From Hemiscyllium ocellatum (taxonomy: Eukaryota), in contig NC_083409.1 of NCBI RefSeq assembly GCF_020745735.1, positions 19,364,341 to 19,428,340 on the forward strand: DNA of 64,000 nucleotides, given 5' to 3'. A program made the position numbers and the translations under genes. Shown here piece by piece: positions 1 to 53,500 of this stretch. Under the pieces are notes generated by a model, which did not search any database, was not told where the DNA came from, and saw only the letters and a list, made by a program, of their open reading frames with translations. Numbering within the stretch: position 1 is the stretch's first letter; each line of letters starts with the position of its first letter.

Positions 1-1165
1 GGTCAAGAACGTAGTCTTCTTCTGTATGTAATCCCTAACCTGGAAATATCAGAAAAGATCCCAATTAGGGATTTCGTATTTCTGACCTAATTGGCGAAAA
101 GACATCAAGACCCCTCCCTCAAATAAATCTCCCAGACAGGGTATTCGATTACGCTCCTATGCTCTGAAGCTGGAGTCCTTTGATCCCAGTCTAAATCCTG
201 GGGCTCCCACTAACGGGGTGAACTACAAATAGCCTCCACCCTGCCGCATTATCCTCCATGCTTTACTGTATTTATGATAATCAGACTTTCACAATGCGCA
301 CCTACCGATCTCATCTTACCCATGAACAGTAAGTTTCTAAAGGGACATCTCACCTGCGAGGCCTCTGCATCAAGCCACATCGACTTTGAGTCATTACGTA
401 CCCATTCACCTACATATAGCAACAGGGTGCTGCTTTGATACTTTTCAGATCTGGGAGGTCCACCGCCCACCCTCCATATCCTGCGGAAGTTTCAATTTGG
501 TAAATTTAATTAAATTGCGCCGACAGCACCAAATAAATGACCCAAGCCGTCCCACAAACCTCCGCAGCACCTGGTTGGGTAATAACAAAGGGAGCACCCT
601 CACAGGATAGAACCCCCAAGGAACAACATTCACTTTAATCAAGGCTATACGGCTGAGCCATGATCTGGGTATTCCCTCCCATCACTGCAAGTCCTGCTTT
701 ACGCTCTCAAACAGCGACACACGGTTAGCTCCATACAGTTGCGGGAAGTGAGGGGTAATAAAAATTCCCAGATAGGGAAAACCTTTCTGTGACCATCTAA
801 AAGGAAACTCCATTCCGTCCTCCAGCTTCAGTACCTGCACCAATCTCCCACAGGCAGGACTTCCGATTTTGGAAAATTTATTCTGTATCCTGAAAAGTTG
901 ACGAATAGTTTATTTTTTTTTATTAGCCAGTGTATGGACTTTTCAGAGTTAGCTAAAAACAGGAGGACGTTGTCCGTATAGAGAGTGATTTTGTATTCCC
1001 CAACTCCCACCTTCGGTGCCGTTATTTCAGGGTCTTTTCAGACAGTCCCTGCCAGTGGTTCAAGTACCAAGGTAAACAGTAGGGGCAACAGGGAACATCC
1101 CTGTCAGCTGCCCCTCCCCACACCAAAATTACTCAATTTCATATTATTCGCGATAATGCCATCCA
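1..1165 (-). mobile_element. Decayed L1/Tx1-clade LINE ORF2 (reverse transcriptase) fragment
   Basis: Minus-strand translation gives KITLYTDNVLLFL...FSGYRINFPKSEVL (YADD-box region) and GRGS*QGCSLLPL (RGTRQGCPLSPL motif); multiple stops. Confidence 0.75.
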
Positions 1166-1989
1166 GATTCATCTCTCCCATCAACCAATCAGGTCATACT
1201 CTCTACCTTTCTCAACCTATCCCCACCTGACCACACAGCTCCCCCAATACCCACCCTGAGTCCTGAAGAAGGGTTACACCTGAAATGTTGACCCCTGAAG
1301 AGGTTAGACAGAGAAGGTTGGATTGCAACAAGAGTCACAGGTACTTCATATCTCATCTCATTGAATCAAACCATTGAGCCCATCAATCCTGAAAACAGAT
1401 TCCAACATTGAAGTCCCATTTTCTGGTTGCACATGTAAAGTCTCTCTCAGGCTGAAGAAAGGAAGCTCTCGACTGAGAAATTAGTGAGCTTAACCTAGAT
1501 CCTGAACAATAGCACAACAGAATGGAGTGATATAAACCAGAAACAGTCTAAATACAGGGCAGCCTTAATACTGCAGCTAGCACAGAGGGGAATGCTGGGA
1601 AGTTTGGTCAGTGTGGAAGTTCGGAGAACTCGGAGACGGAGCCTACCTTTGCTTTTCCAAACGGATTTGGAACTGTCACTTCAGCTGCTGGGAGGCTGCA
1701 CATGCACTTGGTTTGAATGAAATAAAATGATAAACAAGAGAATAGGAGTCTGGTAAGCAGATCAGCTGGGAATTGTTAAGTATGAGGGACTGTCTAAATA
1801 GATTGCTTCAGGACATGTCCATTAGGGAAGGTTTATAAATTGAAAGTACTGAAACTCCAAAACAGAGATTGAAGACAATTACTGGTCCAATGAAGGAATG
1901 GATATTTTTCATTTGTAAGTGAGTTCAATATATTTATTTAATTGAAATGATTCAGCATAAATACATGTGTAGTGAATGTATATAACTTC

Positions 1990-2160
1990 CGGAACTCCCA
2001 CTTGGAGGCTGAGTTGAAAAAAATGACACATTCGGGAGGGGCGGAGATACCTGGAGACTTTGTTCCAGAAGGAAGTTATAGGCCTCAGGACAGCACAGTT
2101 CAATAAGATATGACCCATGAGGGAGGCAGATAGGGAGTTGGAGAATACTATGGGACAGGA
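1990..2160 (-). mobile_element. L1-type C-terminal Cys/His fragment; counterpart at ~52160-52370 (+)
   Basis: ORF 1909-2118 reads HILLNCAVLRPITSFWNKV, resembling the H-x4-C...FW motif at the L1 ORF2 C-terminus. Confidence 0.45.
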
Positions 2161-4363
2161 AAACCCTTCACTCTTCTAAACTCCACTGAGAACAAGGCCA
2201 GTCTTTCCACCCTTTCCTCATCACACAGCCCACTCATTCCAGGGATCAATCAAGTAAAACTCCTCTGAAACACCTCCAATGCATTTATATTCTTCCTTCA
2301 ATAAGGAGATCAAACTACCCTCAGTATTTGAGATGTGGTCACACCAATGTTCAGGAAAAACTGAAACATCACAGTCTCACTTTCTGGTCCTTACTTTTCC
2401 CAGCCTTTTTACTGTCCATATCTAATTGCCCTGGACAAGGCGGTGATTAGCTGCCTTCTTGAACCCCTGCAGTCCGTGTGCTGTAGGTAGATCCACAATG
2501 CATTTAGGAAGGAAATTCCAGGATTCTGACCCAGTGACAATGTAGGAACAGTGTTATAATTCCAAGTCAATCTTGTGAATGGCTTGGAGGGGAACTTGCT
2601 GGGGTGATGATGATCTGCTGCCTTTGTCCTTGATTTAAGTAATCATGATTTTGGAAGATGTTGTCTCAGGATTTTTGGTGAATCTCTGCAGTGCATTTTG
2701 TAAATAATACACAGAGCCGTTACTGAGCGTCGGTGTGGAGGGAATGGATTTGTGTGGATGTGGTGCCAATCAAGCGGGCTAATTTTTTTCAACGAGAGTT
2801 AAATAAAATAATGTAAGACAACATAAAATAAAATAAAATGAAAATGTGCTGCCTTTTTGATAAAACAAAAAATTAACTCCTCCTCTCCCCACAGAGGCTG
2901 CACCTGTTCCCTTTCTCCAGCATCGAGCTTCTATTTGAGATTTGCAGTATTTTGTTTATGTATCTGTTTTAATGCCATTGGTTATAAGAGAAGCATTGGC
3001 CAGCACACTGGGGAGAGTTTCCCTGAGATGGTCACAAAGCCCTTATATTCACATCGACCTGAGAGGGCAGTGGTTTAACCGATCATCCAGCAGATGGCAT
3101 CTTTGCCTTTGCCAGCCTCAGGATAGTGTTCCAGTGTCTGGAGTGGGGCTTGAAACCTGCAGGTTCAGGTGACGGTGTTATCACTGAACCCATCTATTCT
3201 TTTCTGGGATGAGGGTGCCACTGGCAAGACCAGCATTTGTTCTCCATCCCTAACTGCCCTGAAACTGAATAGCTTGCTGGGCCTTTCAAATGGCAGGTAA
3301 GTGTCAGCCATTGCTGGAGTCCTGGCAGAGTCAGACATCTACAACAGGTCTACAAGAACAGCCCTCTTCAGCCCAATGAGCCAAAGCCAGTCAAAACAAC
3401 CACCTCACTTTTCTAATTCCATGTTCCAGCACTTGGCCCGTAGCCCTGTATACCTTGGCATCACAGTTTCACATCAAAATACTTCAATGTTATGGGAGAG
3501 CTTCTGCCCCAACCACCCTTACAGGGAGTGAGTCCCAACAGCCACCACCCTCCGGGTCAAAACGTTTTCCTTATCTTCCCTCTTAACCTTTGGCCATTTA
3601 TCTTTAATCTGTACCCCTCCAATCATTGATTATAATATAACCCCATGTCACCAAGTCTCCCTTAATTGACACATGAACAGTCCTTGACTGTAATGCCTCA
3701 GAGAGAGTCAGGCACCGGAGGCTCAGGGTCTCTGACTCTCAGCCTGTTTATGTCAGTGAGAATTTTCCCTGTTATATCCTGGTAACGATTTGAGCTTTTC
3801 TTGTGAAACCCAGTTGGGATTTCTTTAATGGCATTGAATCTCCCACACGCTCCCACCTCTCTTGATGCTCACCCTTGTCTGGTTAATTCTTCCCATTTCC
3901 TTCTCTTCTTTCAGTTCATTCCATTTCAGGAAAGTCTGTGATATTTCCAGGGAGGATGTGCTCTGGAAACCGCTATTGACAAACTCACTGCCCTTCAATA
4001 GAAGGAAGGCCAATGTTTGCAGCAAGCCTGGACTGTGCCCTTGTGTACCTTGTCTGAAGGATTCCATATGATCTGTCAGTCTCCATCCCAGCCTGATAAC
4101 CATCTCGGACATTGGAAGGAAAGGCCCAGCGTGCAGGTTAACATGGTGCAATAAGCCTTTCAGCTGAAGCTTTGGTGTTTGCGCTCAATGTGTATTATCA
4201 CTTGCTCATTGCTCCCCTTTCACATGATCATGGAGAGAGAACTCTTGTTGGTGCAGTCTTTTAATCATCTCAGGATATTGAAAGCTGTGAGCACAGTGCA
4301 GTCACTTTCACGGACAAGATGGTGATTCCCACAGACAGGAAACAAATGACGAGACTAATCTAT

Positions 4364-4983
4364 TCATAGAGTCATGGAGATGTACAGCACGGAAACAGAC
4401 AGTTCAGTCCAACCAGATATCCCAAAACCCAATCAATCCCACCTGCCAGCACCCGGCCCATATCCCTCCAAACCCTTCCTATTTATATACCCATCCAAAT
4501 GCCTCTTAAATGTTGCAATTGTACCAGCCTCCACTACTTCCTCTGGCAGCTCATTCCATACACATACCACCCTATATGTGAAAGATTTGTCCCTTAGGTC
4601 TCTTTTATAGCTTTCCCCTCTCACCCTAAACGTATGCCCACTCGTTCTGGATTCCACGACCCCAGGGAAAAGACTTTGCCTATTTATCCTATCCATACCC
4701 CTCATAACTTTGTAAACCTCTATAAGGTCACCCCTCAGCACCAGGGAAAACAGCCCCAGCCTGTCCAGCCTCTCCCTGTAGCTCAAATCCTCCAACCTTG
4801 GCAACATTCTTGAAAATCTTTCCTGAACCCTTTCAAGTTTCACAACATCTTTCCAATAGGAAGAGACGAGAATTGCACACAATATTCCAACAATGGCCTA
4901 ACCAATGACCTGTACAACTGCTACGTGACCTCCCAACTACTGTACTCAATACTCTGACCAATGAAAGAAAGCATGCCAAACAC
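4364..4983 (-). mobile_element. Young 5'-truncated CR1/HER1-type LINE 3' end, present in arm A only
   Basis: ORF 4433-4882 (KLERVQERFSRMLPRLEDLSYRERLDRLGLFSL...WNELPEEVVEAG) plus CTATGA-type tail; absent at the matching arm-B position (~49590-49630). Confidence 0.9.
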
Positions 4984-6697
4984 TTTTGAGCAGGATACCT
5001 GAGGGAATCTCTTCAGAATGGGATCTTGTCAAGCCCCCTGAGGTGGGGGTGGTGGTGGTCGGGGTGTGGTGGTGGTGGAGCCTCAAATGATGGTGCCAGA
5101 GACTGTGCAACTTTCAGCAGTGCACCAAAGTCTCAGCCTGGATTCTGCGCTCTCATTTCTGAGGTGGCTTTCAATCCGATGACCATTTTGACTATGAGGC
5201 AGGAACATTGCCCATGGAGCCACGGTCAATGACAATGTAAACTGTGTGGCTCTGAAGGCCTGAGTTTGCATCTCAGCTCGGGAATATATTAGCTCATTCA
5301 TCAAATCTGTTTCTGCCCCTCTGCAGGCTGACCAGGCTGCCGGTGCCTTTCCAACACTCCCACGTTTCCTCTTGTGTCACAGCTCATTCTCTTGAGGGAT
5401 CATTGTGCTCAGAGTCAAAACGTGTGGCACTGGAAAAGCACAGCAGGTCAGACAGTTGTGCTCAGGCCAAGGACATGACCTTGTCCCTCTGTCAGATCCT
5501 CTTCGAGAAATTCATGGCTCACCACTGCCCTCTCCAGGACAGTTAGGGAAGGGCAACAAGCAAGGATAGAGATGGGGACGCGAAGCCGAAAGTGCTGTTC
5601 TCTGCAGTTTGGGACACGCTTTTATAGCCATTTGTTAGATCTTTGAGTGTAATTCAGTTTTTGCTGATCCCAGTGTCAATCTGAAGGACACGCCACCTTT
5701 CAGTCTGACAAACCAGGTTCACCCATGTCATGGCTCTATTTCTGGCCAAGACTCCAATCTTTCAAAGAGATGAATTCAAGCCTCACCAGTTTGATCATTT
5801 GAATTATACGCCATTTATTTTGATTTCTCCTGAGATGGGGGGTGAAAGGGGGGGGGCATTGATGTGTCAGTCCTTCCCTAATTGCCCTGGAGAGAGTGGT
5901 GGTGAATCAAATTATACCTAGGAAGCAACTGACAGGTCATTCCTACTGAAATCCAATGGAGTGACTATAGATTTGTTCATGGCCAATGGATGGAGTAATT
6001 ACCCATAATCCTCAGTTGCAGTACAAGTACTCTATAGTTATGCGAAGGCAGCTGTTTCACTCTGCCCGAACAATAAAAAGACAGAAGTCACACAACACCA
6101 GGTTTTAGCCCAACAGGTTCATTTGAAATCACAAGTTTTCGAAGCGCTGCTCCTTCATCAGGATAACCCCAGCCCCCCATCGGTATCCCCACATTAGCGA
6201 ACAGTACAAATAAACTGGGGCTCTGTGAGGATCTTTGGATCATGATATTGATCATACCACAAGAAAAAAGTTTTGCATGCTATGTTTTTTCAAAAAAAGA
6301 AGCACTTTGATAAGACTTTTGATTGTCTTCACGGTGTGCTGTTTTGTTCATTCTGTGATATGGATGGACTATGTCAGTATTGGGTATCACAAAGAATGGA
6401 TCCTCCATCAAACACTTTCCAGCACACTCTCTCCATCTTGCTTTACTCCTTATTGACTTTTTGACATTGTCCCTGTTCCCTCACTCCAACACGGTCCCAG
6501 TGGAATTGATGGCTGGAGTTCATGACCTCACTCTGTGTGAAGGTTGGTGTGAAGTGAGGCCAGTGTGTTGGAGCTTGGGCTCCTGCCTCAGGCCCAGGTG
6601 TTGGGGCCAGTTCTCCAATCTGCACATTGTCCTTTTCCTCTTTCTGAATGAACTGGATCAAGTTGCAGTAAGGATCTGGCAAAAGGTGTCTTGTCTA

Positions 6698-7826
6698 AAA
6701 TGTTCCCAGCATTGGATACAGAACTGGCTGAGTCAGAGGAGACAGAGGGCAGTGATGGGAGGATGGTTTTCCGAATGGAGGGCTGTGATTCCTAGTGTCC
6801 TACAGGGATCAGTGGTGGGAACTCTGCTGTATGTGGTCTACATAAATGATTTAGAGGAAAGTGTAGCTGGTCTAATTAAATGTTTACAGTTGATACAAAG
6901 ATTGGTAGAGTTACAGATAATGAGAAGGATTGTCAGAGGGCACAGCAGGATATAGATCATTTGGATGCATGGACAGAAAAATGGCAGATGTAGTTTAATC
7001 CAGACAAATGTAAGGTGATGCATTTTGAAAGGTGATGTACGGGTGGGAATTATACAGTGAATGGCAGAATCCTTTGGAGTATTGATATGCAGAGGGATCT
7101 GGGTGTGTATGTTCACAGATCACTGAAGGTGGCAGCACAGGGAGGTAAGGCAGTAAAAAAGGCTTATGGCCTGCTTGCCTTCATTGGAAGGGGCATTGAG
7201 TATAAGGATAGACACGTCATGCTGCAACTTATTGACCATTAGTTAGGCCACACTTGGAATATTGTATACAGTTCTGGTTGCCACACCATCAGAAGGATGT
7301 GGATGTTTTGAAGATGGTGCAGAAAATGTTTACCAGGATATTGTCTGGTATGGGGGATTTTAGTTCTGAAGAAATGTTGGAGAGACTGGATTTGTTTTCA
7401 CCAGAATGAGGGAAAATGAGGTGTAACCTCAAAGAAGTTTATTAAGTTTTGAATGGCATAGGTAGAGTGGAAAATATGAAGCTTTTTCCCAGGATGGGGG
7501 GGTCACTTACTCGGGGACAGAGGTTCAAGGTGCGGGGGGGGGGGTGGGGGGGTGGGGGGAAGGGGGAATTTAATAGAGATGGGCGAGGCTACTATTTCAC
7601 ACAAGGGAGTTGAGTACCTGGAACACACTACCAGAGGAGGGGGTGGAAGCAGACACAATAGAAGTATTCAAGAAATACCTGCACTAATGCATGAATAGGT
7701 AGGGAATAGGGGGATATGAATCCTGTAGGTGAAGATAGTTTCAGTATGGAAGGGTACAATGTGTCAGGACAGGCTGGGAAGGTCGAATGGCCTGTTCCTA
7801 TGCTGTGTTGTTCCTTGTTCTTTGGT
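6698..7826 (+). mobile_element. Decayed CR1 LINE, RT to 3' tail; shared with arm B (~45716-47745, -)
   Basis: WIQNWLSQRRQRAVMGG...SVLQGSVVG..LYINDLE, QRDLGVYVHRSLK and AFIGRGIEYKD motifs. Confidence 0.9.
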
Positions 7827-8304
7827 CCCTGCTGTTGAATTGGATTCTCGGGAGCCAGCTCCGTATGAAGAGCCTGTTCTCATTCTTTTGTTGGAGTTCA
7901 TGGGGCAGCTGCTGCTTCCTTGCTACGTCACTGATCAAACCAACAATGGGGAAAGCCTCTTGATATTTTAACTACACTGTCTGCAGGAAAATATTTGGCC
8001 GAGGTTTTAATATTATTTAATAAGATAATGAAGTCAATACACCAGTGTTGTTTGCGGCTGGGAACATTTAACATCATGATCCAAGTTTTAAATGGACACT
8101 CACTCGTGATCATACAGTTTTCAATTATTATCTCCCCTTACGTGTTGTGAAGAGGTTGGCAAACATGTTTTGATGAGGACAGTGCATCTCCAACACCAAA
8201 AGACGGAGTGGGCGGCTGTTTGAATTCTCACTTGTGATAATACAGATTTTAATGAATTAGTGTTACTTTCCCCACTCTCTGGGGGTTGGGGGGTGTCGCT
8301 GTCG

Positions 8305-8668
8305 AGTTCAGGTTCCTTCAGTTTCCTCATTTCCCCTTCCCCCACCTTGTCTCAGTTGAATCCCTCGAACTCAGCACTGCCTTCCTAACCTGCGATCTTC
8401 TTCCTGACCTCTCCGCCCCCACCCCACTCTGGCCTATCAGCCTCACCTTGACCTCCTTCCACCTATCACATCTCCGTTGCCCCTCCCCCAAGTCTCTCCT
8501 CCCTACCTTTTATCTTAGCCTGCTGGACACACTTTGCTCATTCCTGATGAAGGGCTTATGCCCGAAACGTCGAATTTCCTGTTCCTTGGATGCTGCCTGA
8601 CCTGCTGTGCTTTTCCAGCAACACATTTTCAGCTCTGATCTCCAGCATCTGCAGACCTCACTTTCTCT
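8305..8668 (+). mobile_element. Penelope-like element terminal remnant (pyrimidine-rich tract, hammerhead motif, GATGCTGCCTGACCTGCTG tail)
   Basis: Same short family recurs at 48085-48225 (-), 53175-53415 (+), 1165-1295 (+), 57960-58078 (-); hammerhead cores at PLE termini are established knowledge. No RT/GIY-YIG coding sequence seen, so PLE origin is inferred. Confidence 0.6.
8540..8575 (+). ncRNA. Minimal type I hammerhead ribozyme motif
   Basis: ATTC-CTGATGA-A-GGGC(TTAT)GCCC-GAAAC-GTC-GAAT: 4-bp helix I, complete core, 4-bp helix II with tetraloop, loopless palindromic helix III (ACGT), GUC cleavage triplet. Confidence 0.75.
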
Positions 8669-8671
8669 TCA

Positions 8672-10118
8672 ACTTCTTTAGTAAACCATGGCTCCCTCTC
8701 TCGACAACTACCTCCCTACCTGATAGGTATATACTTCTCAAAGACACGCAGTAGCTGTTCCTTGAATAAGCTCCAATTTTCAAGTATGTCCATCCCCTGC
8801 AGTTTCCTTCCCCATCCAATGTATCATACATCTTGCCTAATCACATCATAATTGCCTTTCCCTCAGTTATACATCTTGCCCTGCAATATACACCTATCCC
8901 TGCCCATTGGCATTTTAAACATAGCTGAAATGTGATCACTATCGCCAAAGTGCTCCCTTACCTCCAAACCTAACACCTGGCTGGGTTCATTCCCTAGTAC
9001 CAAATCCAATATGGCATCACCCCTTATTAGCCTGTCTATATATTGTGTCAGAAAACCCTCCTCCACACATTGAACAAAAATTGACCCATCTAAACTACTT
9101 GAATTATAGTATTCCTAGTCAATGTTGGGGAAGTTAAAGTCCCCCATAACAACTACCCTGTTACACTCACTCCTATCGAGAATCATCTTTGCCATCCTTT
9201 CTTCTACATACGTGGAACAATTTGGAGGTCGATGGAAAACTCTCAACAGGGTGACCTCTCCTTTCTTGTTTATAACCTCAGCCCAAACTACCTCAGTGGA
9301 TGAGTCCTCACATGTTATCTCAGCTGCTGTAATACAACCCATGATTAACAGTGCCACACCCCTCCCTCTGTTACCATCATCTCTGTTCTGGTTGAAACAT
9401 CTAAATCCCGGAACTTGCAACAAAGTCCTCTAACCATGTCTCTGAAATGGCCACAATATCAAAATCCCAGGTACCAATCCATGCTGCAAGTTCACACACC
9501 TTATTCTGGATGCTCTTGGCGTTGAAGTACACACATTTCAAACCAACATCCTGATTGCTGGTGTCCTCTCGCAAACTTGTAAACCTATCCCTGACCTCAC
9601 TACGCTCAACCTCCTGTACACTGGGACTACAAGTCAGGTTCCCATCCCCCTGCAACATTAGTTTAAACTCCCCCTGAAGAGCAATATCAAATTCTACCCC
9701 CCAGGATATTAGCACCCCTCTCGTTCAGGTGAAGACCATCCTGTTTGTAGAGTTCCCACCTTCCCCAGAAAGAGCTCCAATTATCCAAGAATCCATAACC
9801 TTTCCTCCTGCACCATCCCTGCAGCCACATGATCAGCTCTGCTATCTCCCTGTTTCTCACTTCACTAGCACGTGACACGGGCAAGAAACCAGAGATAACA
9901 ACTCTGTTTGTTCTAGCTCTAAGTTTCCACCCTAGTTCCCTGAATTTCTGCCTTAAATCCCCACCTTTCTTCCTACCTATGTGGTTGGTGCCTATATGGA
10001 CCATGACTTGGGGCTGCTCCTACTTCTCCCTCAAGGATCCCAAAAACATGATCAGAGACACCACAAACCCTGATACTTGGGAGGCAACACAACAACTGTG
10101 AGTTTCTCTTGTTCCCAC
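8672..10118 (-). mobile_element. CR1 LINE 5' part: ORF1 SGNH esterase plus ORF2 APE endonuclease
   Basis: VHIGTNHIG...DGLHLN (SGNH blocks), IVAISETWL, VVVMGDFNFPNID, ILDLVLGN, GDSDH. Confidence 0.9.
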
Positions 10119-10124
10119 AAAATG

Positions 10125-10705
10125 AGAGTGTTCCGGCTGCCATATTCTGGCTGTCCACCAAAGTGGCCATTGGTGAGGACACCTTGAGAATACAGGGCTC
10201 CGTTCTGGTCTTCCTGCTACAGGAACAATGTTTTTCAACTTGAAAGGAGTCAAAAAAGATTTGCAACAATGTAGCTGGGGTTGGAGGGTTTGAGCTGTAG
10301 AGAGAGGCTGACTACACTGGGGCTATTTTTCCCTGGAGCGGTGGAGGCTGAGGGGTGAAGTTACAGAGGTTTATAACATCATGAGGGGCATGGATAAGGT
10401 CAATAGCCAAGGTCTTTTTCCCAGGGTATGTGAGTCCAAAACTAGAGGGCATAGGTTTAAGGTGAGAGAGGAAGCAAATGGTAGGGATCTAAGGAGCAAC
10501 TTTTTCATGCAGAGGGTGCTGCCAGAGGAAATGGTGGAGGCTGGTACACTTACAGCATTTAAAAGGCATCTGGATGGCTATACAAATAGAAAGGATTCAG
10601 AGGGATATGAGCCAATTACTGGCACATGGGACTCGATTAATTTAGAATATCTGGTTGGCATGGATGAGTTGAACCAAAGGGTCTATTGCTGTGCCGAAAG
10701 ATTCT
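10125..10705 (+). mobile_element. CR1 3' end shared by both arms (arm B ~38765-39345, -)
   Basis: MRGMDKVNSQGLFP..SKTRGHRFKVR ORF and reverse-complement match between arms. Confidence 0.85.
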
Positions 10706-11029
10706 CTGACTAAGTCTCTGGTTTAAATAGACAAAGCTTCTGAGACAGAGGTGACAGTGCTCCCACTGACCAGGTTCCAGTTTGTACAGGGCTCCGCTCT
10801 CAGCTGGATGGTTGGGAGTTGGAGCTGAGTTTAACCTGTATATTGGAGAGGAGTAAGCAACCTTTTTGCTCAAAGCCTCCAGAAATGAGAAGGTGACATT
10901 TATGAGCAATTCAGAGCAATGATCTACTCAGTTATTTTGACTCCTGGGGCCTGCTGAGTACTAAAACTCAGCATTTAGGGATTGCTGAGAAATATCTTCA
11001 TTGACTTGGACATTAATTGTACTTTTCAG

Positions 11030-11150
11030 GTTCCACAGTTTAATGAAGAGTCCAGAAGATTATAGCTTTTGGTTATTTCCTGATCTCATTGTTGCTGTCT
11101 ACAAGGCTGTGAAGGACACAGAGTGGAAGAAGTACTTTCCAAAAGAATAG
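11030..11150 (+). pseudogene. RNASEL: RNase L-like terminal coding exon, arm A copy (ORF intact; preceding KEN exon deleted)
   Basis: Acceptor acttttcag|G, phase 2, then [39 protein letters not shown], colinear with recalled human RNase L C-terminus [37 protein letters not shown]. Confidence 0.85.
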
Positions 11151-11269
11151 AGGCTGCTGCTGTCTTCAAAGGGCTGCCATCTCTTGAGCGGAAATGAGAC
11201 AGAACCACATGCTTCAGGGCTAGAATGGAAAGAAGGAACTTACATTTGTATCACAGAATCCCTATAGTG

Positions 11270-12170
11270 TGGAAGTAGGCTATTCAGCCCATCAAGTCCA
11301 CATTGCCCCTCTGAAGAGCACTCCACCCAGCCCCCTGCTCTATCCTTGTATTTTTCAATGGCTAATCCACCTAGTCTGCAAATCCCTGGACACTATGGGC
11401 AAATTTAGAACGGCCAATTTACTGAGGCTGCAGATCTTTGGACTGTGGGAGGAAACCAGAGCACCCGGGGGAAGCCCACACAGGCACAGGGAGAATGTGC
11501 AGACTCCACACAGACCTGCCTGAGGTGGGTCCCTGGTGCGGTGAGGCAGCAGTGCCAACCACTGAGCCATCGTGTACCCACATGTATTGCACTTTTTATC
11601 ACCTGAGGATGTTCCAAAGCAGCTTACTACCAGAGATGTGGGCTTGGAACACGAATAAGGTTACATTTGTGGCACACAACTACCAGCCAATGACTGTCTC
11701 CAACAAGAGAGAATGTAACTATCACCTCTTGATGTTCAGTGGCTGTGTGGTGTGTGAACATATTGACTTTGAGAAAATTCACCCCTATGAGTGTACTCCA
11801 CCTATCAGTTAATCATCTGTGAGCCTGCAAGCTGCACAGACTGAGATCAATTCACAGAATCCCAACAGGTCCACACCGAATCTCCAAAGAGCATCCCATT
11901 CCCCCACCCTATTACTCAACATTTTCCCTGACAACTGCACCTACCCACACATCCGCGAACACCATGACCAATTTAGCATGGCCAATTCACCTGACTTGCA
12001 CATCTTTGGATTGTGGGAGGAAACCGGAGCACCCAGAGGACACCCACACAGACCCGGGGAGAAGGTGCAAACTCCACGTACAGTCACCTGAGGGTGGAAT
12101 CGAACCCTGGTCCCGTGTGCTGTGAGGCAGTAGTGCTAACCATTGAGGCTCTGTGCTGCCCATTATTGCT
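11270..12170 (-). mobile_element. Two HE1-type tRNA-derived SINEs (about 11270-11580 and 11850-12170); counterparts about 37880-38210 and 37300-37620 (+)
   Basis: TGGTTAGCACTG A-box, GGTTCGATTCC B-box, GGGTTTCCTCCGGGTGCTCCGGTTTCCTCCCACAGTCCAAAGA body. Confidence 0.85.
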
Positions 12171-12769
12171 TGTTGTAGTGTCTGCTTCATGCCTTGTAAT
12201 GTGTTTTATTGTTTAAATAAACCAACTCCGAGTTAATGGATTGTTTGTGGGGGCAGAATCTTTCACATATCATTGTGAAAGGCTGGAGAAAACACTGTGC
12301 AGATGAGGCCTATTGCACATGCAGCTTAATCTGCAGGTAGAAAATATAAGCGACAGCCTTCGATGGTTGATCTGATTTTAACCTCAACTCTGCATTCTCC
12401 AAAAACGTTCCATCCCTTCAGTCATCAAGAATCTATTTCTCTCGGCCTTAAAAAATCTAAAGATTCTGCATCTACTGCCTTTTAAGGAAGGGAATTCCAA
12501 AGACTGACAACTCTGAGAGGAAAAACATGTTTCTGAATCTCTGTTTTGAATGGACTCTCCCTTAATTTTAAACAGTGATCCCTAGTTCTGGATTCTCCCA
12601 CAAGAGGAAACATCCTTTCCACATCCACCCGGTCAAGGCCCCTCAGGATCTTGCATGTTGCAATGGAGCCTTGCATTCAGTTTCCCCTCACAACACACCA
12701 TAATGTTCTATGAGCTTTCGTGATGACTTGATGTAACTACACACTAACCTTCTGTGATTAATGCACAGA

Positions 12770-13085
12770 GACCCAGATGTGATTCTGGGGTCACAGGCTC
12801 AAATCCCACTGTGGCAGATGGGGGAATTTGAAATCAATTTTAAAAATCTGCAATTAGGAGCCTAACGATGACCATGCATCCATGTCGATTGTCGGGAAAA
12901 CCCATCTGGTTCACTCATGTCCTTTAGGGAAGGGATCTGCCATCCTGACCTGGTCTGGCCAACATGGGAATCCAATCCTACAGCAATGTGGATGACTGTT
13001 AACTGCCCTCTGGGGCAATTAGGGGTGGGTAATAAATGCTGTCCGAGGCAGTGATGCCCTCATCCCGTGAATGAATTAAAAAGAA
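12770..13085 (+). mobile_element. SacSINE1/DeuSINE-like elasmobranch SINE; counterpart ~36395-36700 (-), others ~40270-40510 and 42975-43530
   Basis: Recurrent CCCATCTGGTTCACT...TCCTTTAGGGAAGG...CACAGCAATGTGG...GGGCAATTAGGG...AATAAATGCTG sequence; family name is from recollection only. Confidence 0.55.
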
Positions 13086-32154: not shown

Positions 32155-32265
32155 ACCGTGACAACTCTCAGCCGAAGCTGACCCTGCTGCACCCCTCCCG
32201 GGAGCAGATAAATGCCAAGGGCACTGCCACCCTGGTGTGCCTTGCCAATCACTTCTATCCCGATG
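32155..32265 (+). pseudogene. IGKC: Ig kappa constant exon C2, 5' third only
   Basis: tctttcag|AC CGT GAC...: RDNSQPKLTLLHPSREQINAKGTATLVCLANHFYPD, then fused to sequence lying ~1 kb downstream in the C1 copy (reads on as AIGQ*). Confidence 0.93.
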
Positions 32266-32784: not shown

Positions 32785-33395
32785 AGACAGATACCTACAG
32801 GCAGCACTGAGTAACACACCCACATTAAGAGAGACACCTCCAGGCAGCACTGAGTAACATGCTCATGCTCAGAGCCACACCTACAGGCAGCATGGAGTGT
32901 GAGCATTTTACACAGTGCTGCCTATCTCTCTGACTGTCTGTGTTACTTAATGCAGCCTGTCGGTGTCTCTCTGAGGTATTTGTCTCTTAGCAGTGGATAC
33001 AGAATGGGCTTTGTGGTGGAGATTAAAGATTAGGCTTTAATCTTCTCAAATCATGAATGAAAAACAGTTCAGCTAATTCAGTCTGAGATGGCAGCTCATT
33101 AAGATGGCCAAATTTCCCCAGTTGCCTGAGGAGAGACACTGACTGGCGGAACTGTGTAACCTGCTCACGCTCAGGGAGACACCTACAGGCAGCATGGAGT
33201 GTGAGCATGTTACTCGGTGCTGTCTGGCTCTCATGTGTGTGTTATTCTGTTCTGATCGTCAGTATCTTACTGAGTGTGAATGTGTTACTCTGTGATGTCT
33301 GTAGGTGTCTCTCTAAATGGGTGTGTTATTCTGTTATGATCGTCAGTATCTGACTGAGTGTGAGTATGCTACTCTGTGATGCTTGTAGGTGACTC
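32785..33395. repeat. ~43-bp degenerate minisatellite (GACACCTACAGGCAGCACTGAGTAACA...) in both orientations, plus a ~425-bp-period duplication (32965-33110 and 33390-33525)
   Basis: Direct reading; three units are also present in arm A at ~14885-15005. Confidence 0.65.
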
Positions 33396-41400: not shown

Positions 41401-43061
41401 GAACCAAATGCATGAACTAAATTAGTTGAATGGGCATATAGTCTTATCAACTTTCAGAAGTACTTAATAATTTTCCACTAAACAGTCTGTTGACTAAAGT
41501 TAAAACCCATGGGATTGAAGATGAATGTTTGACTTGGTTCGGAGGTTGGTTTATTGACAAATAACAGAGAAAGAAAATGACGAGTGGTGTTCCACAAGGA
41601 TTCTGTGGTGAGGCCTTAACTACTTACTGTATGTATTAATGAGAATCATAGTTCCACATTGACACGAAGACTGATGGAATAGTAAGCAGTGCAGATGGTC
41701 TTTTTGTTTAAAACTCACTCTGAGGACATGGGTATTGCTATCTAGGCCAACATTTACAACACATTCTGTGTTGCCCTTGTGACTCATGGAATCATCACAC
41801 AGTGTAGAAGCAGGCCATTCAGCCCATCCAATTCATACCAACCCAACGAACAGCATCCCATCTGGACTTACCCCTTTCCTGTACTGCTGCATCTCTCACG
41901 GCCAATCCACCCGGCCAACACATCCCTCGACACTATGTGCAATTTGGCATGGCTAATCCACCTAACCAACACATCTATGAACTGTATGGAAGAAGCCCAC
42001 ACAGACATGGGGAAAATGTGCAACCTCCACACAGACAGTCGTCCCAGCGTGAAATTGAACCCAGGTCCCTGGTGCTGTGAGGTAGCAGCACTGACCATTG
42101 AGCCACAATTCTGCCTTTTGCAAGGTGGTGGTGAGCTGTCTTCTTGAACCACTGCAGTCCATGTGCTGTAGGTAAACCCACAATGTCGTTTGGGAGGGAA
42201 TTCCAAGATTTTCATCCAGCGACTCTGGAGGAACAGTAATATATTTTCAAATCAAGCTTCTATGTGGATTGGAGGGGAACTTGTTTTTGGTAGTGTTCTG
42301 TGTCCTTCTACATGGAAATGATGTGGGTTTGGAAGGTGCTGTCTTAAGAGACTTGGTGTGAATTCCCGCAGTGCATCTTGTAGATGGTGCACACGGCTGT
42401 TACTGAGCATCAGTGGTGGAGGGAGTGGATGTTTATCGATGTGGTGCCAATCAAGCAGGCTGCTTTGTACTGGAAGATATCAAGCTTCTTGATTGTTTTT
42501 GGGGCTGCATCCATCCAGGCAAGTGGAGAGTAACCCATCACAGTCCTATCCAGAACTTAACTGATCTTTTCTTAATTCATTTACTGGATCGGGCATCACT
42601 TGCTATGTCAGCATTTATTGCCCAGAATCAAGTGGGGTGGCACAGCACTGGGACCAAGGTTTAGTTCCCCCCTCAAGCAACTGACTGTGTGGAGTTTGCA
42701 CGTTCTCCCTGCGTCTGCCTGGGTTCCCTCCCGGTGATCTGGTTTCCTCCCACAGTCCACAAACGCGCGGGTTGGGTGGAATGGTCATGGGAAATGCAAG
42801 GTTATAGGGGAGTGGGTCTGGGTGAGATGTTCTTTGGAGAAGCGGTTTGGGTTGATTGGCCTATTTCCACATTGTAGTGATGCTATGAATTTCTTCACTC
42901 AGAGGGTTTTGAATCTTTGGGATATTCATCGATACTTAGGCGTTTGAATAAATTCATGATAGAGATAATACATATGTGGGGAGGCAATGAGTTAATGGTA
43001 TCATCACTAGATTCTTAATCACAAGAGCCAAGTAATGTTCTGGGGGATCTGGGATCACCGT

Positions 43062-43373
43062 GGGGCAGCATGGTGGTACAGTGGTTAGCACTGCTGCCTC
43101 ACAGCACCAGAATCCCAGGTTCGACTTTAGCCTCGGGTGACTGCCTTTTATGGAGTTTGCACATTCTCCCTGTGTCTGCATGGGTTTCCTCCGGGTGCTC
43201 TGGTCTCCTCCCACAATCCAAAGATGTGCAGGTTAGGTGAATTGGTCACGCTAAATTGCCCATAGTCAGGGGTGAATATGGGGAATGAGTCTGGGTGGGT
43301 TACTCTTCAGAGGGTCGCTGTGGACTTGTTGGACCGAAGGGCCTGTTTACATACTGGAGGGAATCTAATCTAA
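43062..43373 (+). mobile_element. HE1 SINE nested inside a SacSINE1-like element; further HE1 copies at ~33930-34110, 41790-42110, 42630-42880, 43540-43820, 57100-57340
   Basis: A/B boxes and HE1 body; host SINE resumes at ~43374. Confidence 0.8.
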
Positions 43374-44179
43374 ATCCTGGCAATGCATGGAGTGGAATTT
43401 TAAATCCAAAAAGACTCTGGAGTTAAGAGTCAAATGATGACCATTGTTGGGGGAGAACCCCATCGGGCCCACTAATATCCATCAGATTGCTGTCCTTGCC
43501 CATACTGACTGACATATGACTCCAGACGCACAGCAACACAGAATCATAGAATCCCTACTGTGTGGAAGAAGGCCATTCAGCCCATCAAGTACAAGCAGCA
43601 TTTCACCCAGAACCAGCCCTCTCTCCTAACCTTACACTTCCATGGCCAATCCAACTAATCTGCACATCTCTGGACTGAGAGAGGAAACTGATGCACCCGG
43701 AGGAAACCTATTCAGACACAGGGAGAACATACACATTCAACACAGACAGTTGCCTGAAGGTGGAATCAAACCCAGGACCCTGGTGCTGTGAGGTAGTGAC
43801 GCCAGCCACTGTGCCACCCATTCCTCATCTCTGATCAAAATGTCTAACCCCTTATTCCCAGGCTGGGGCTCTGCTTTAGAATCCCCAGGTAGGGGCACAT
43901 CCTTCCAAAATCTACCCTGTCAGGGCCCTGGAGAATTTTAAATGTTTCAGTGAAATCTCATCCCAGCCTTCTGAATTCTAGGGAATCCTGACCCAGTTCC
44001 CTCTCTCAACCATTAGACAATCCCTCAGCCCGTCACATGAAATGTTGCTGGGTTTGATCATCTCAGTAAGAGTTTCAAGGAGGGAAGGAGAAAGAAAGAC
44101 TCTTTCTGCTTTGAATCGATGCTAAAAACTGAAAAAAACAGGAAAATATTGTCACTAAGTATTGTTCACATATTCTTAC

Positions 44180-44299
44180 TTTTCATCAAAGTGCTGGGTG
44201 AGGTTTCTTATGAATTTCAGGAGGTCACTGGTGGTGTTCTTATATTCTTTATTCTTGCCTTGTCTCTTGTTCATGTCCATTGAGGAGAATGGAGTCAAC
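44180..44299 (-). pseudogene. RNASEL: RNase L-like KEN/ribonuclease-domain exon with mutated acceptor and +1 frameshift
   Basis: VDSILLN[+G][34 protein letters not shown]|gtaaga versus recalled human [40 protein letters not shown]. Phase-2 donor matches the phase-2 acceptor of the terminal exon; acceptor reads ttctcg rather than ttctcag. Confidence 0.85.
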
Positions 44300-46089
44300 C
44301 GAGAAGGAAATGAGCAGCAGAGTTTGTTTTCTGTGTTGATTAAATTCACCTTGCTTGCTCCTCTGATCACCTGAAGAAAGGGCGAGACTCTGAAAGATTA
44401 TGTTTTCTAATAAACCTGTTGTTCTAATAAATCTGTTGTCGCATGATTTTTGACCTTGTCCTCTGATCACATTCAGGTTATTCCCACGAGCACTGCATGT
44501 TCTTGCTTCTCCAGGTCAGCAGGTGGCGATTTTGACAATGGATTTGACAATGGTCTCCATCAGAGAGGACCCACGAATCAGGGACAGAGACCAGAGATTA
44601 TAGGCCCCGCTCTTGCTCCTCAGTCCCAGACCCGAGCACAACGGGCCCCCTGGCATCCCAGGTCCCGGTTATTACGTCCCAGACCCTGTCCATAATGCAA
44701 ATGGTGCAACTGATCCTTCTGATTTTTCCCAACCTTGCCAGGTCTCCACAAACATTGGGATTCGTTACATTCAGTCTTTGCCATGAAGGACCCTGACTGA
44801 TGGGAAACAGACTGAAATGGGTCAATAATACAGTATTGGGGAGTTACAGATGCAGATTGCCAAGTGGAAATCTGATGCTGTGGCTCTCACAGAGAACGGG
44901 CGGGACTGGGAATTCCTGGATACAAGGTGTTCAGTAAAGATAGGAAAGAGGGAAAACTGCGGGAAGTGGTGAGATTGTTCTGGAGCCAGACAATGCTGAC
45001 CAACCCTTGGCCCTGAGATATGATGGAGATGAAGGGTGAACTGTGCCAGGCTTTAACTCACTGTTACCAGGGTAAAACAGGAATTATCCATTTCACAAGA
45101 GAGTGAATGGAACTAACAAATAGATGCATGTGAAACACCCACCCAATTCCTGAGAGAGGGGGGACAAGAACAGGGACATTCTCAGACAGAAATGATGCTA
45201 AAAATGGTATCACCCCGAGAGAGATGGGTGGGATGGGGAAAGTGACAGCGACAACCCCCAGAGAGTGGGGAAAGTAACACTGACACATTTAAAACTGTAT
45301 TATCACAAGTGAGAATTCAAACAGACACCCATTCCGTCACACGGTGTTGAAGATGCACTGTCCTCATCAAAACATGTTTGAAAACTTCTTCATAACATGT
45401 AAGGGGAGAGAAACATTGATAACTGTATTATCACGAGTGAGGGTCCATTTAAATCTTGGACCATAATGTGAAATGTTCCCAGCCATAAACAACACTGGTG
45501 TATTGACATCATTATCTTATTAAACAATATTAAAACCTTGGTCAACCATGTTCCTGCAGACAGTGCATTTAAAATATCAAGAGTCTTTCCCCATTGTTGG
45601 TTTGATCAGTGACGTAACAAGGAAGCAGCAGCTGCCCCATGAACTCCAACAAAAGAATGAGAACAGGCACTTCATACAGAGCTGGCTCCCGAGAATCCAA
45701 TTCAACAACAATGATCAAAGAACAAGGAACAATACAGCACAGGAACAGGCCCTTCGGCCCTTCAGGCCTGTGCTGACACATTGTGATCTTCCTCACTGAC
45801 ACTGTCTTCACTTAGAGGATTCATATCCCCCTATTCCCTTCCTATTCATGCATTAGTGCAGGTATTTCTTGAATATTTCTATTATGTCTGCTTCCACCCC
45901 TTCCTCTGGCAGTGTGTTCCAGGCACTCAACTCCCTTTGTGTGAAATACTTGCCTCCCACATCTCTTTTAAATTCCCCCGCCCCTTGAACCTCTGTTCCC
46001 CAATCAGTGACCCCTACACCCTGGGGGAAAAAAAAGCCTCGTATTCTCCACTCTACATATCCCATTCACAACTTTATAAACTTCGATCA

Positions 46090-47028
46090 GGACATAGAAC
46101 ATAGAATATCGAACAATACAGTACAGAACAGACCCTTCTGCCAACGATGTTGTGCTGAACACTTGTCCTGGCTTAAGCACCTATCCATGTACCTATCCAA
46201 TTGTCGCTTAAATGTCACCAATGATTCTGACTCTGCCACTCGCACAGGCAGCGCATTCCATGCCATCACCACTCTCTGGGTAAAGAACCTACCCCTGACA
46301 TGCCCCCTATACTTTCCACTCTTCATCTTAAATTTATGTCCTCTTGTAACACTCTGTTGTACCCAGGGAAAAAAGTCTCTGACTGTCTACTCTATCTATT
46401 CTCCTGATCATCTTATAAACCTCTATCAAGTCACCCCTCATCCTTCGCCGTTCCATTGAGAAAAGGCCTAGCACTCTCAACCTTTCCTCGTACGACTTAT
46501 TCTCCAGTCCAGGCAACATCCTCGTAAATCTCCTCTGCACCCTCTCCAAAGCTTCCACATCTTTCCTTAAGTGAGACGACCAAAACTGCACACAGTACTC
46601 CAAATGTGGCCTAACCAAGGTCCTGTACAGCTGAAACATCACCTCATGGCTCTTGAATTCAATCCCTCTGCTAATGAACGCTTGGGCCTTCTTACAAGCT
46701 CTATCCACCTGAGTGGCAACTTTCAAAGAGCTATGAACATAGACCCCAATATCCCTCTGCTCCTCCACCTTACTAAGAACCCTATTGTTAACCCTGTATT
46801 CAGCATTCTTATTTGTCCTTCCAAAATGGACAACCTCACACTTGACAGGGTTGAATTCCATCTGCCACTCCTCAGCCCAGCTCTGCATCATATCTAAGTC
46901 CCTTTGCAGCTGACAACACCCCTCCTCACTATCCACAACTCCACCTATCTTCATATCGTCTGCAAATTTACTGACCCACCCTTCAACTCCCTCTTCCAAA
47001 TCATTAATAAAAATTACAAACAGCAGAG
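46090..47028 (-). mobile_element. Young CR1 3' insertion nested in an older CR1, arm B only; 233-aa RT C-terminal ORF still open
   Basis: ORF 46334-47035 (INDLEEG...KFADDMKIGG...WQMEFNPVKC...); AGGAC flanks both ends; absent in arm A at ~7425. Confidence 0.9.
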
Positions 47029-50000: not shown

Positions 50001-50194
50001 TTCTGTGGCAGTTTCTCGTGCACATCCTCCATGGAATTATCACAGATTTTACTGAAATGGAATTAACTCAGAGAGGAGAAGGAAATGGGAAGAATTAACT
50101 AGACAAGGGTGAGCATCAAGAGAGGTGGGAGTGTGTGGAAAATTCAGTGCCATTAAAATTTCCAACTGGGTTTCACAAGGAAAACTCAGCAACT

Positions 50195-50505
50195 GGGTGG
50201 CATGGTGGCACAGTGGTTAGCACTGTTGCCTCACAGCACCAGGGACCTTGGTTCAATTCCCGCCTCAGGCGACTGACTGTGTGGAGTTTGCACGTTGTCT
50301 GCGTGGGTTTCCTCCGGGTGCTCCGGTTTCCTCCTACAGTCCAAAGATGTGCGAGTCAGGTGAATTGGCCATGCTAAATTACACTGTAGTGTTAGGTAAG
50401 GGGTATATGTAGGGGTATGGGTGGGTTGCGCTTCGGCGGGTCGGTGTGGACTTGTTGGGCCGAAGGGCCTGTTTCCACACTGTAAGTAATCTAATCTAAT
50501 CTAAT
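50195..50505 (+). mobile_element. HE1 SINE, arm B only
   Basis: Full head to ctaatctaatctaat tail; empty site in arm A at ~3790-3800. Confidence 0.9.
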
Positions 50506-53500
50506 TTTCAAATCGTTACCAGGATATAACAGGGAGAATCCTCACTGACATAAACAGGCTGAGTGTCAGAGACCCTAAGCCTCCGGTGCCCGACTCTCTA
50601 TGAGGCATTACAGTTATGTTCAACAGACACTGTTCATGTGTCAATAAGGGAGACTTGGTGACATGGGGTTATATTATAATCAATGATCAGAGAGGTACAG
50701 ATTAAAGATAAATGGCCAAATGTTAAGAGGGAACATAAGGAAACACATTTTCACCCAAAGGGTGGTAGCAGTCTGGGACTCACTCCCTGTAAGGGTGGTT
50801 TAAGCAGAAACTCTCCCATAACATTGAATTATTTCGATGTGCAACTGTGATGCCAAGGTATACAGGGCTACAGGCCGAATGCTGGAAAATGGAATTAGAA
50901 TGGTGAGATGGTTGTTTTGACTGGCTTTGGCTCATTGGACTGAAGGGCCTTGTTCTTGTAGACCTGTGACAGATGTCTGACTCTGCCAGGACTCCAGCAA
51001 TGTGGCTGACCCTTACCTGCCATTTGAAAGGCCGAGCAAGCCACTCAGTTTCAGGGCAGGTAGGGATGGAGAACAAATACAGTGACACCCACATCCCAGG
51101 AAAGAATAAACAGCCTCAGTAACACAGTCACCTGAACCTGCAGGTTTTCATGTCCCACTCCAGAGACTGGAGCACTATCCTGAGGCTGGCAAAGGCAAAG
51201 ATGCCATCTGCTGGATGATCGGTTAAACCACTGCCCTCTCAGGTCAATGTGAATGTAAGGGTTTTCTGATCATCTCAGACAAAATCCCTTCACCACCACC
51301 CCCCCCCCCCCCCCACCCCACAGTGTGCTGACCAATACTTCTCTTATAACCAATGGCATCAACACAAATACAAAAACAAAATACTGCAAATCTCAAATAG
51401 AAGCGCGATGTTGGAAAAATGGAACGGTGCAGCCTCTGTGGGGAGAGGAGGAATTAACTTTTTGAGGTTCAGTGATGTTTTATCAAAAAAGCAGCACCAT
51501 TTTATTTTATTCCATTTTAAGTTGTTTTATTTATTTTATTTAAATTTTGTTTATCAAATTTTAGCCCGTTTGATTGGCACCACTTCTACACACATCCATT
51601 CCCTCCACACCAACACTCACTAACATCTGTGTGTTCTATTTACAAGATGCACTCCAATAAATTCATTAAAAGTCCTGAGGCAACACCTTCTAAACCCATG
51701 ATTACTTGAATCAAGATGGACAAGGGCTGAAGATACAATGGGAACATCACCCCAGCAAGTTCCCTCTCAGCTATTCATCAGTTTAACTTGGAAATACCAT
51801 CACTGGGTCAGAATTCTGGAATTCCCTTCCTCAGGACATTGTGGGTCTACCTACAGCTCAGGACAAGTAAAGATGGACAGTAAAAAGGCTGGTAAAAGTA
51901 AGAGTAGGTGTGATTTGGGACCAGAAAGTGAGACTGTGATGTTTCAGTTATTCCTGGGCATTAGTGTGATCACATCTCAAATACCGTATTGTGTGTAGTT
52001 GTGGTCTCCTTATTGAAGGAAGAATATAAATGCATTGGAGGTGGTTCACAGGAGTTTTACCCAATTGATCCCTGGTATGAGTGGGCTGTGTGATGAGGAA
52101 GGATTGGAAAGGCTGGCCTTGTTCGCAGTGGGGTTTAGAAGAGTGAGGGGTTTTCCTGTCCCACTATATTCTCCAACCCCCATCTGCCTCCCTTGTGTGT
52201 CATACCCTCCTGCCCCTTACTACACGAGGAATTGAACTGTTTAGTCTTGAGGCCTATAACTTCCTTCTGGAACTAATCCTCCCGGTATCTCCGGCACTCC
52301 CTGATGTATCACTGCTTTTTCAATTCAGCCTTCATTCCAAACTCCCTGAGTGGGAGTTCCTGTAGTTTTATACATTCACTGCAGATGTATTTACCCTGAA
52401 TCATTTCAATGCAATAAAGAAATGTTGATCTCACTTACAAATGAAAAATATCCATTCCTTCGTTAGAGCAGTAATTGTCTTCGGTCTGTTTTGAAGTTTC
52501 AGTACTTTCCATTTATTAAACTTCCCGAATGGACATGTCCTGAAGCAGTCTATTTATACAGCCCCTCAAACTAAACAAATCCCAGATTATATTTTCTTGT
52601 TCATCATTTTGTTTCATTCAAACCAAGTGCATGTGCAGGCTCCCAGCAGCTGAAGTGACAGTTCCAAATCAGTTTGGAAAAGCAAAGGTAGACTCCTTCC
52701 CTGAGTTCACCAAACTACCACACTGACCAAACTTCCCAGCATTCCCCTCTGTGCTGGCTGCACTTAGTGCGAGCTGCAGCATGTAGGCCACCCTAAATTT
52801 ATACTGTTTCTGATTTATATCACTCCATTCTGTTGTGCTGTTGTTTAGGATATGGGTTAAGCTCACTTATTTCTCAATCAAAAGCTTCCTTCTTTCAGCC
52901 TGAGAGAGACTTTACATTTGCAAACAGGAAATATGACTTCAATGTTGGAATCTGTTCTCAGGATTGATGGGCTCGATGATTTGATTCAGTGAAATAACCT
53001 CGTCTAATCTCTTCAGGGGCCGACATTTTAGGTGTGACTCTTCTTCAGGAAGGGGGGATAGGTGTGAGGGGAGCTGCAGATAAAGGGGTGGTTTGGAGCA
53101 AGATGGTGAGGTGGAGATAGGTTGAGAAAGATAAAGAGTATGACCTGATTGGTCGATGGGAGAGATGAATCCAGTATCATCCCACCCCTCAACCAACCAG
53201 GTCCTATCCTCTACCTGTCTGCACCTATCCCCACTGAACCACTCTGCCCCCACCACTCCCTTTATTTGCAGCTCCCCAAACACCCACCCACCCCACTTCC
53301 TGAAGAAAGGTTACACCCAAAACGTCAACTTCTGCACCTCCTGATGCTTCCTCGCTTACTGTGTTCTACCAGCCTCCTACTTGTCAACCTTGGATTCCAG
53401 CATTTACAGTTTTTTTTTGTCTCTAATCTCTTCAAAGCCCAGGATGAGTGTGAGGAGATTGGGCTTTGATGGAACTACCCACAGAATGAAGTCAAAAGAA

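Follow-up and report, generated by a model that had tools for sequence, protein, structure and literature searches.

The analysed stretch of Hemiscyllium ocellatum DNA (RefSeq assembly GCF_020745735.1, contig NC_083409.1, positions 19,364,341–19,428,340 of the forward strand; all 64,000 nucleotides are hereafter the window) carries a large imperfect palindrome with remnants of immunoglobulin (Ig) kappa light-chain genes: one constant (C) exon in each arm and a single variable (V) segment in the spacer between them. When the window was searched by tblastn with 23 shark light chains/kappa proteins, three C copies and one V were recovered, and nothing else. From left to right, the arms, the spacer and the Ig parts are:

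1166–20183: left palindrome arm, 19.0 kb, in a collinear inverted chain with 53171–28809
16285–16610, minus strand: C1, kappa C exon, pseudogene, with a TAG stop at 16461–16459 (codon 50)
20184–28808: spacer, 8.6 kb, rich in transposable elements (TEs) and holding the only V remnant
23456–23504, plus strand: V leader exon, ATG to splice donor (tblastn, 82–94% identity to shark kappa leaders)
23691–23884, plus strand: V exon remnant, framework region 1 (FR1) to the start of FR3 (V-set, E = 1.6e-8)
28809–53171: right palindrome arm, 24.4 kb (self-BLAST and chained alignment)
32155–32265, plus strand: C2, kappa C exon stump, 111 nt
55431–55756, minus strand: C3, the one intact kappa C exon, 2.3 kb past the right arm and not part of the palindrome

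The original prediction, made from the letters of this stretch, had proposed a ~52-kb imperfect palindrome at 1165–53172, with arms of ~19 and ~24 kb, a spacer of 8.6 kb, C1 pointing leftward, C2 pointing rightward and the only V lying in the spacer. Self-BLAST and a chained inverted alignment of both halves, together with the tblastn search for the Ig parts, confirmed each of these points. A single antidiagonal chain ran from L1166/R53171 inward to L20183/R28809 (L and R denoting positions in the left and right arm) and comprised nine collinear inverted blocks with 15,604 aligned columns at a mean identity of 88.6%, all large blocks having E = 0. The chained alignment placed the blocks as follows:

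L1166–3793 / R53171–50508: inverted block 1
L3791–4361 / R50188–49632: inverted block 2
L4986–6359 / R49608–48232: inverted block 3
L6367–7430 / R48083–47026: inverted block 4
L7434–8288 / R46084–45252: inverted block 5
L10135–14827 / R39323–34634: inverted block 6
L14826–15513 / R32968–32267: inverted block 7
L16500–19694 / R32265–29087: inverted block 8
L19894–20183 / R29089–28809: inverted block 9

Collinearity spanned unique as well as repeated DNA—the C exon, its intron, its flanks and TE insertions that both arms carry at corresponding sites—and hence went beyond family-level repeat similarity. The spacer had no counterpart in the arms except for TE-family matches and is thus non-duplicated.

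An assembly artefact, namely a false inverted duplication or a mis-joined haplotig, would be one explanation of such a structure, inverted duplications being a known error type of long-read assemblies. However, the arms differ far beyond the level expected of haplotypes or errors: they are separated by 5–12% substitutions, a short interspersed nuclear element (SINE), two pieces of long interspersed nuclear elements (LINEs), a heterology block of 5.9 versus 1.8 kb and two clean deletions. The segments present in one arm only are:

4362–4985, minus strand: LINE tail, 624 bp, left arm only
8289–10134, minus strand: left heterology block, a LINE 5′ part (esterase-type open reading frame 1 [ORF1] and endonuclease) truncated on its 3′ side
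32969–34633: stretch of 1.67 kb, right arm only, including an expanded 43/84-bp minisatellite
39324–45251: right heterology block, 5.9 kb, with SINE and LINE pieces and a KEN-domain exon remnant
46085–47025, minus strand: LINE reverse-transcriptase fragment (RVT_1), 941 bp, right arm only
50189–50507: SINE, 319 bp, right arm only, with clean edges, 91% identical to the SINE at 24106–24415

The two heterology blocks (L8289–10134 and R39324–45251) had nothing in common. Both deletions, of 986 bp and 199 bp, affect the right arm, and since the left arm and the C3 unit each retain the two stretches, they are later right-arm losses. Block by block, the chained alignment accounted for the difference in arm length. 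The arm-specific SINE and LINE insertions and the deletions with their clean edges, the divergence of the arms and the lack of a single N anywhere in the window together make an assembly or haplotig artefact very unlikely, and the arm differences also rule out chance. Two tiers of different age within the arms (see below) speak against it as well, and we attach next to no probability to this explanation. Alignment and edge inspection here upheld the earlier argument that arm divergence and arm-specific insertions are hard to reconcile with an artefact.

The V and C sequences can be assigned to the kappa (type III) isotype, given that their best named relatives are shark Ig kappa light chains. 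V is up to 89% identical to such chains, with named kappa relatives in Heterodontus, Chiloscyllium, Hemiscyllium, Cetorhinus and Scyliorhinus; lambda-named chains were merely 47–61% identical to the kappa query P0001 in the same protein search. C3, a C1-set domain (E = 1.7e-22), is 96–97% identical to kappa light chain-like proteins of Chiloscyllium punctatum and H. ocellatum, and 79% identical to kappa of Heterodontus francisci. A PDB sequence search did not resolve the isotype of C3, with multi-domain chains filling the top ranks. Two of the database proteins, P0001 and P0002, are shark kappa fragments (FR3, joining [J] segment and C; 76–82% identical to C3) that had been deposited as Aeromonas veronii and Salmonella enterica, almost certainly because DNA of a shark or fish had contaminated the bacterial assemblies. 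In addition, the leader–V intron at 23588–23690 aligned collinearly with the C. punctatum kappa gene models P0008 and P0010, whose N-termini, judging by this alignment, seem to be mis-predicted read-through of that intron.

C3 is the sole intact C exon in the window; neither C copy of the palindrome is whole. C1 carries eight residue changes relative to C3 besides its in-frame TAG, and C2 ends where the next 986 bp were cleanly deleted, a stretch kept in the left arm at 15514–16499 and in the C3 unit. The homology of V to all 19 of the 19 full-length kappa chains searched stops at 23884–23902, just past RFTGVS in FR3, and is followed by LINE-like sequence and then by the SINE at 24106–24415. 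The V remnant had no FR3 end, no complementarity-determining region 3 and no recombination signal sequence (RSS). A heptamer–spacer–nonamer scan of the window returned just one weak RSS match (3004–3042), which we took as chance. As for J, no frame of the window contained FGxGT, no stretch of it had at least six of the nine residues of FGKGTKLRL, and tblastn gave no match. No octamer was found upstream of V, where about 130 bp separate the end of a LINE tail from the ATG. A candidate second V promoter at 50748–50815 was rejected, its match to the sequence upstream of V (23208–23275) being a mere LINE-tail motif. Every Ig part inside the palindrome is accordingly dead.

These lesions bear on a functional layout, in which the central V would join a J–C on either side by deletion or inversion, as in teleost Ig light-chain (IgL) clusters. 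The geometry, with V (plus strand) between C1 (minus) and C2 (plus), is what such a layout would have. Yet the window offers neither a J nor a credible RSS, V is cut in FR3, C1 holds a stop, C2 is a stump, and the octamer is missing upstream of V with a LINE tail in its vicinity. For the present sequence this explanation can be regarded as refuted, and we rate its probability lower still than that of an artefact. The description of the locus as head-to-head kappa clusters around one central V hence stood as to geometry and fell as to clusters: C1, C2 and V are all broken remnants, and there is no J.

The arms turned out to consist of two tiers of divergence. In the outer tier, from 1166 to about 10.7 kb, Kimura two-parameter distances (K2P; substitutions only) of the blocks were 0.12–0.16, as against 0.05–0.07 in the inner tier from about 10.7 to 19.7 kb; mismatches amounted to 12.3% and 5.1%, respectively. 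The border between them was located by likelihood change-point analysis:

L10728/R38738: tier change point, support interval 10705–10753 (twice the log-likelihood difference [2dLL] = 250)

Second change points within the tiers were weak (2dLL 12.7 and 7.5), so each tier is homogeneous. The switch lies where a LINE tail common to both arms has its 3′ end (L10135–~10711, R39323–~38755), the family 3′ end lying at about 10711 in a five-copy alignment. LINE 3′ transduction was rejected as a source of the inner tier, since the LINE tail is part of the older tier and the DNA downstream of it part of the younger. Arm-specific TE insertions were denser in the outer than in the inner tier (four versus one). 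We read the two-tier divergence best as the trace of one past arm-to-arm copying event.

With the C3 unit as outgroup, C1 and C2 proved to be sisters, a grouping backed by 105 informative sites versus 32 and 17 for the alternatives. K2P was 0.047 between C1 and C2 and 0.13–0.14 from either of them to C3. Between C1 and C3, the exon had diverged by a K2P of 0.035 (3.5%) and the flanks by 0.17 (17%), yet nine of the eleven exon differences alter a residue; low exon relative to flank divergence, combined with these replacements, fits a C exon that was constrained until the last copying event and neutral drift of both palindrome copies thereafter.

The same comparison touches on a more conventional explanation, according to which the arms are two neighbouring kappa units that happen to face in opposite directions and resemble each other by family-level paralogy, with no specific palindrome event. 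C3 does have 1.3 kb in common with C1 and C2, plus LINE parts, at 84–89% identity, which is near that of the outer tier. But this similarity is confined to the surroundings of the C exon, whereas the arms are collinear over 19–24 kb, far in excess of a kappa unit, and across shared TE insertions and an RNase L-like remnant. The clear sisterhood of C1 and C2 likewise argues against ordinary neighbours, as does a left arm that lacks both V and J and whose derived breakpoint lies within a LINE. We consider this explanation unlikely, though less so than the two preceding ones.

The distance from the V leader to C2 is 8.7 kb on the same strand, and intact kappa gene models span 7.3 kb (H. ocellatum), 9.1 kb (C. 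punctatum) and about 10 kb (S. torazame). Based on shared strand and a length within the span of intact shark kappa models, V and C2 are taken to form one ordinary kappa unit. What, then, is the left arm? It extends only 3.6 kb upstream of C1 and breaks off at 20183, within the ORF1 portion at the 5′ side of a LINE. The features at the two breakpoints are:

18307–20183, plus strand: inner end of the left arm, a LINE reverse-transcriptase fragment to 19694 followed by the 5′ ORF1 part of another LINE (19735–20183)
53039–53306: local inverted repeat, 2 × 130 nt with an 8-nt gap, 71% complementary

Both LINE pieces of the inner end are also present in the right arm at 30440–28809, and the ORF1 part recurs upstream of C3 at 60304–60746. 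More extensively, collinearity of the LINE piece upstream of C3 (60304–61226) carries on through the right arm and into the spacer (29089–28338), where it takes in the rightmost 470 bp (28338–28808), while on the left it stops at 20184. On this ground, 20183/20184 would be a derived breakpoint, with the right arm and the spacer keeping the parental order. In our reading, the left arm is an inverted partial copy that holds the C exon, 3.6 kb of upstream intron and about 15 kb of downstream DNA and, as far as preserved, had no V or J. The inner junction itself, inside the LINE ORF1, shows no readable microhomology after such divergence. At the other end, the right arm stops at the centre of the local inverted repeat (about 53172), and homology to the left arm begins within about 10 bp of this centre, so that a left-arm outer breakpoint at the hairpin centre would fit breakage or template switching at a hairpin. 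As for the unit of C3, neither a V nor a J was found in the 8.2 kb of upstream DNA within the window; collinearity of this DNA with the spacer suggests that the V of C3 would fall just beyond 64 kb.

Taken as a whole, the locus is probably the fossil of an inverted segmental duplication within a shark kappa (type III) array, which was built up in two or more rounds and has lain inert from then on. The parent unit would be the plus-strand V (23456–23884) with C2 (from 32155), of whose 3′ part—J–C intron, C exon and downstream DNA including the RNase L-like remnant—an inverted partial copy was placed upstream of V. Round 1, represented by the outer tier (K2P about 0.13), would have created the inverted repeat, with the left outer breakpoint at the centre of the hairpin-type repeat. 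In round 2, represented by the inner tier (K2P about 0.05), the inner 9.5 kb may have been rewritten in the direction that we infer, from the right arm to the left, either by a long gene-conversion tract or by break-induced replication that began at or near the shared LINE 3′ end and finished at 20183/20184. The C exon was presumably still under constraint at that time. Neutral decay would have followed, probably leaving the TAG in C1, the 986-bp deletion in C2 and the loss of the V 3′ end together with RSS and J.

Several points weigh against this history. Two tiers could equally result if a palindrome that was older and shorter had its arms lengthened inward at a later time, which would be the same class of event with a different history. 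The arms were compared within the window, and their status as nearest relatives thus applies to the window and not to the genome, which matters most for the outer tier at 12%. The LINE ORF1 pieces that mark the derived left end could in principle be separate insertions of a young subfamily, and their K2P values are uneven (0.10, 0.20 and 0.08). Finally, the hairpin arms are about as diverged as the arm ends (71–78%), such that cause and product of the event are not separable there. Inverted duplication had further been proposed as a route of Ig cluster birth. Kappa-cluster DNA was indeed copied, as the sisterhood of C1 and C2 attests, but no cluster was born: the left copy is without V and J, and all Ig parts are broken.

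We next turn to exchange between the arms at present, which the palindrome had been suggested to promote. The longest exact inverted match between the arms is 138 bp, and six matches reach at least 100 bp; at 5.1% divergence, 0.29 runs of at least 138 bp are expected by chance. This exact-match survey revealed no island of recent near-identity between the arms, which appear not to have exchanged sequence since the last copying event. Efficient homologous exchange usually requires longer identity than 138 bp. Considering how short the exact matches are relative to this length, spacer inversion or arm conversion is unlikely today. The suggested arm-to-arm conversion is therefore borne out for the past, with one copying event recorded in the two tiers, but does not extend to a palindrome that is recombination-prone now.

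In cartilaginous fish, Ig genes form miniclusters, and an isotype can have up to about 100 loci (PMC12227049). In sharks and rays, the elements of an Ig cluster share one orientation with V and J 250–500 bp apart, and the nurse shark has about 60 kappa genes (PMC5192425). Our literature searches turned up no report of a palindrome in the kappa arrays of sharks. V and C2 resemble a shark kappa minicluster in being co-oriented, in their usual unit length and in sequence (V 89% and C 96–97% identical to kappa proteins), but differ in that they lack J and RSS, V is cut short, neither C copy is intact and one C lies inverted upstream of V. In teleost IgL loci, such as those of zebrafish and catfish, V is often inverted and joining by inversion is possible (PMC5192425). 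V opposes C1 in orientation here too, yet with no RSS or J inversional joining is impossible. In the human IGK locus, the V genes form two large clusters that are inverted relative to each other and highly similar (bioRxiv 10.1101/2025.09.25.678462). The H. ocellatum palindrome shares with these proximal and distal IGKV clusters an inverted segmental duplication within a kappa locus and copies in opposite orientation; however, the human copies are highly similar and have many functional V and one shared J–C, whereas here the C end was copied, the copies are 5–12% diverged and nothing is functional.

Two further systems invite comparison. Ampliconic palindromes of sex chromosomes, such as P1–P8 of the human Y, have long arms around a unique spacer, are kept at >99.9% identity by ongoing conversion and contain genes that are expressed. 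The present locus likewise has long inverted arms that flank a unique spacer and were homogenised by arm-to-arm copying, but in place of ongoing conversion there was a single past recopying, after which the arms drifted to 5% divergence, and its genes are dead; mismatches of 5.1% and 12.3% set the arms apart from a conversion-maintained palindrome of the Y type with its >99.9% arm identity. Replication-based inverted duplications—by fold-back or microhomology-mediated break-induced replication (MMBIR), of the duplication–inverted triplication–duplication (DUP-TRP/INV-DUP) type—place an inverted copy beside its source, with a breakpoint at a short inverted repeat. Our locus likewise has an inverted copy next to the source, and one of its breakpoints maps to the middle of a short inverted repeat that may itself be a product of the event, but its spacer measures 8.6 kb and microhomology at the junctions is unreadable, and we infer the mechanism.

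The locus thus belongs to a known kind of structure, in which an inverted segmental duplication decays within a multigene family, and involves no new mechanism and no present function. What the analysis adds is that every Ig part of the palindrome is a pseudogene, that V can be assigned to the C2 unit, that the arms have a history of two tiers bordering at a LINE end, and that the outer breakpoint is centred on a hairpin. How the Ig miniclusters of cartilaginous fish, which number in the hundreds, multiply, homogenise and die is poorly documented at the sequence level. This locus provides a dated example with resolved breakpoints, in which a C end was copied in inverted form, 9.5 kb were reset once and both copies decayed. 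It also puts two breakpoint associations on offer, a LINE 3′ end and a hairpin centre. More broadly, recurrent inverted copying and arm-to-arm recopying, with breaks at LINE 3′ junctions or short hairpins, could be an engine of turnover and concerted evolution in shark kappa arrays, of which this locus would be a two-round fossil, and the inverted partial copy upstream of V may have silenced and doomed the parent cluster; we offer this as a tentative idea that is rather improbable as it stands. The locus shows that a palindrome of this kind can be a by-product of clusters, and possibly what kills them, and is not necessarily where they are born. What the palindrome records is how a kappa array gets reshuffled, and not a working or newborn pair of antibody genes.

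Among the remaining features, one exon remnant in the right heterology block deserves mention:

44179–44397, minus strand: RNase L/IRE1-type KEN-domain exon remnant, motif DLLKFIRNLTQH, in the right-arm-only block

Its Pfam match (PF06479, E = 9.3e-5) scored 23.0 bits, just below the cutoff of 23.3. The remnant is single-copy in the window, its left-arm equivalent being replaced by the 3′-truncated LINE 5′ fragment. At gathering thresholds, Rfam reported no RNA family in the window, including 8540–8575, although a 36-nt minimal hammerhead motif could fall below threshold. The 43/84-bp minisatellite occurs downstream of the C exons (14898–15004, 32793–32892 and 33197–33396) and is expanded in the right arm alone. 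Nested, internally deleted LINE copies crowd the spacer and the 56–64-kb region. LINEs with an esterase-type (GDSL/SGNH) ORF1 (PF13472, E = 2.6e-8), typical of CR1/L2-like elements, were seen at 9690–10019 (minus strand) and 60514–61059 (plus strand). Several short LINE ORF pieces fell below Pfam recognition, and their LINE nature was assigned by BLASTP to RVT_1-positive or esterase-positive ORFs of the window. Lastly, the EukProt model P0003 from another shark contains a 66-residue piece that is 68% identical to 59613–59810 (minus strand) and is joined there to a kappa C exon. In the window, 59613–59810 is LINE-derived DNA read opposite to the LINE ORFs, and the fusion in the model points to a similar LINE piece upstream of a C exon elsewhere that was mis-called as coding.

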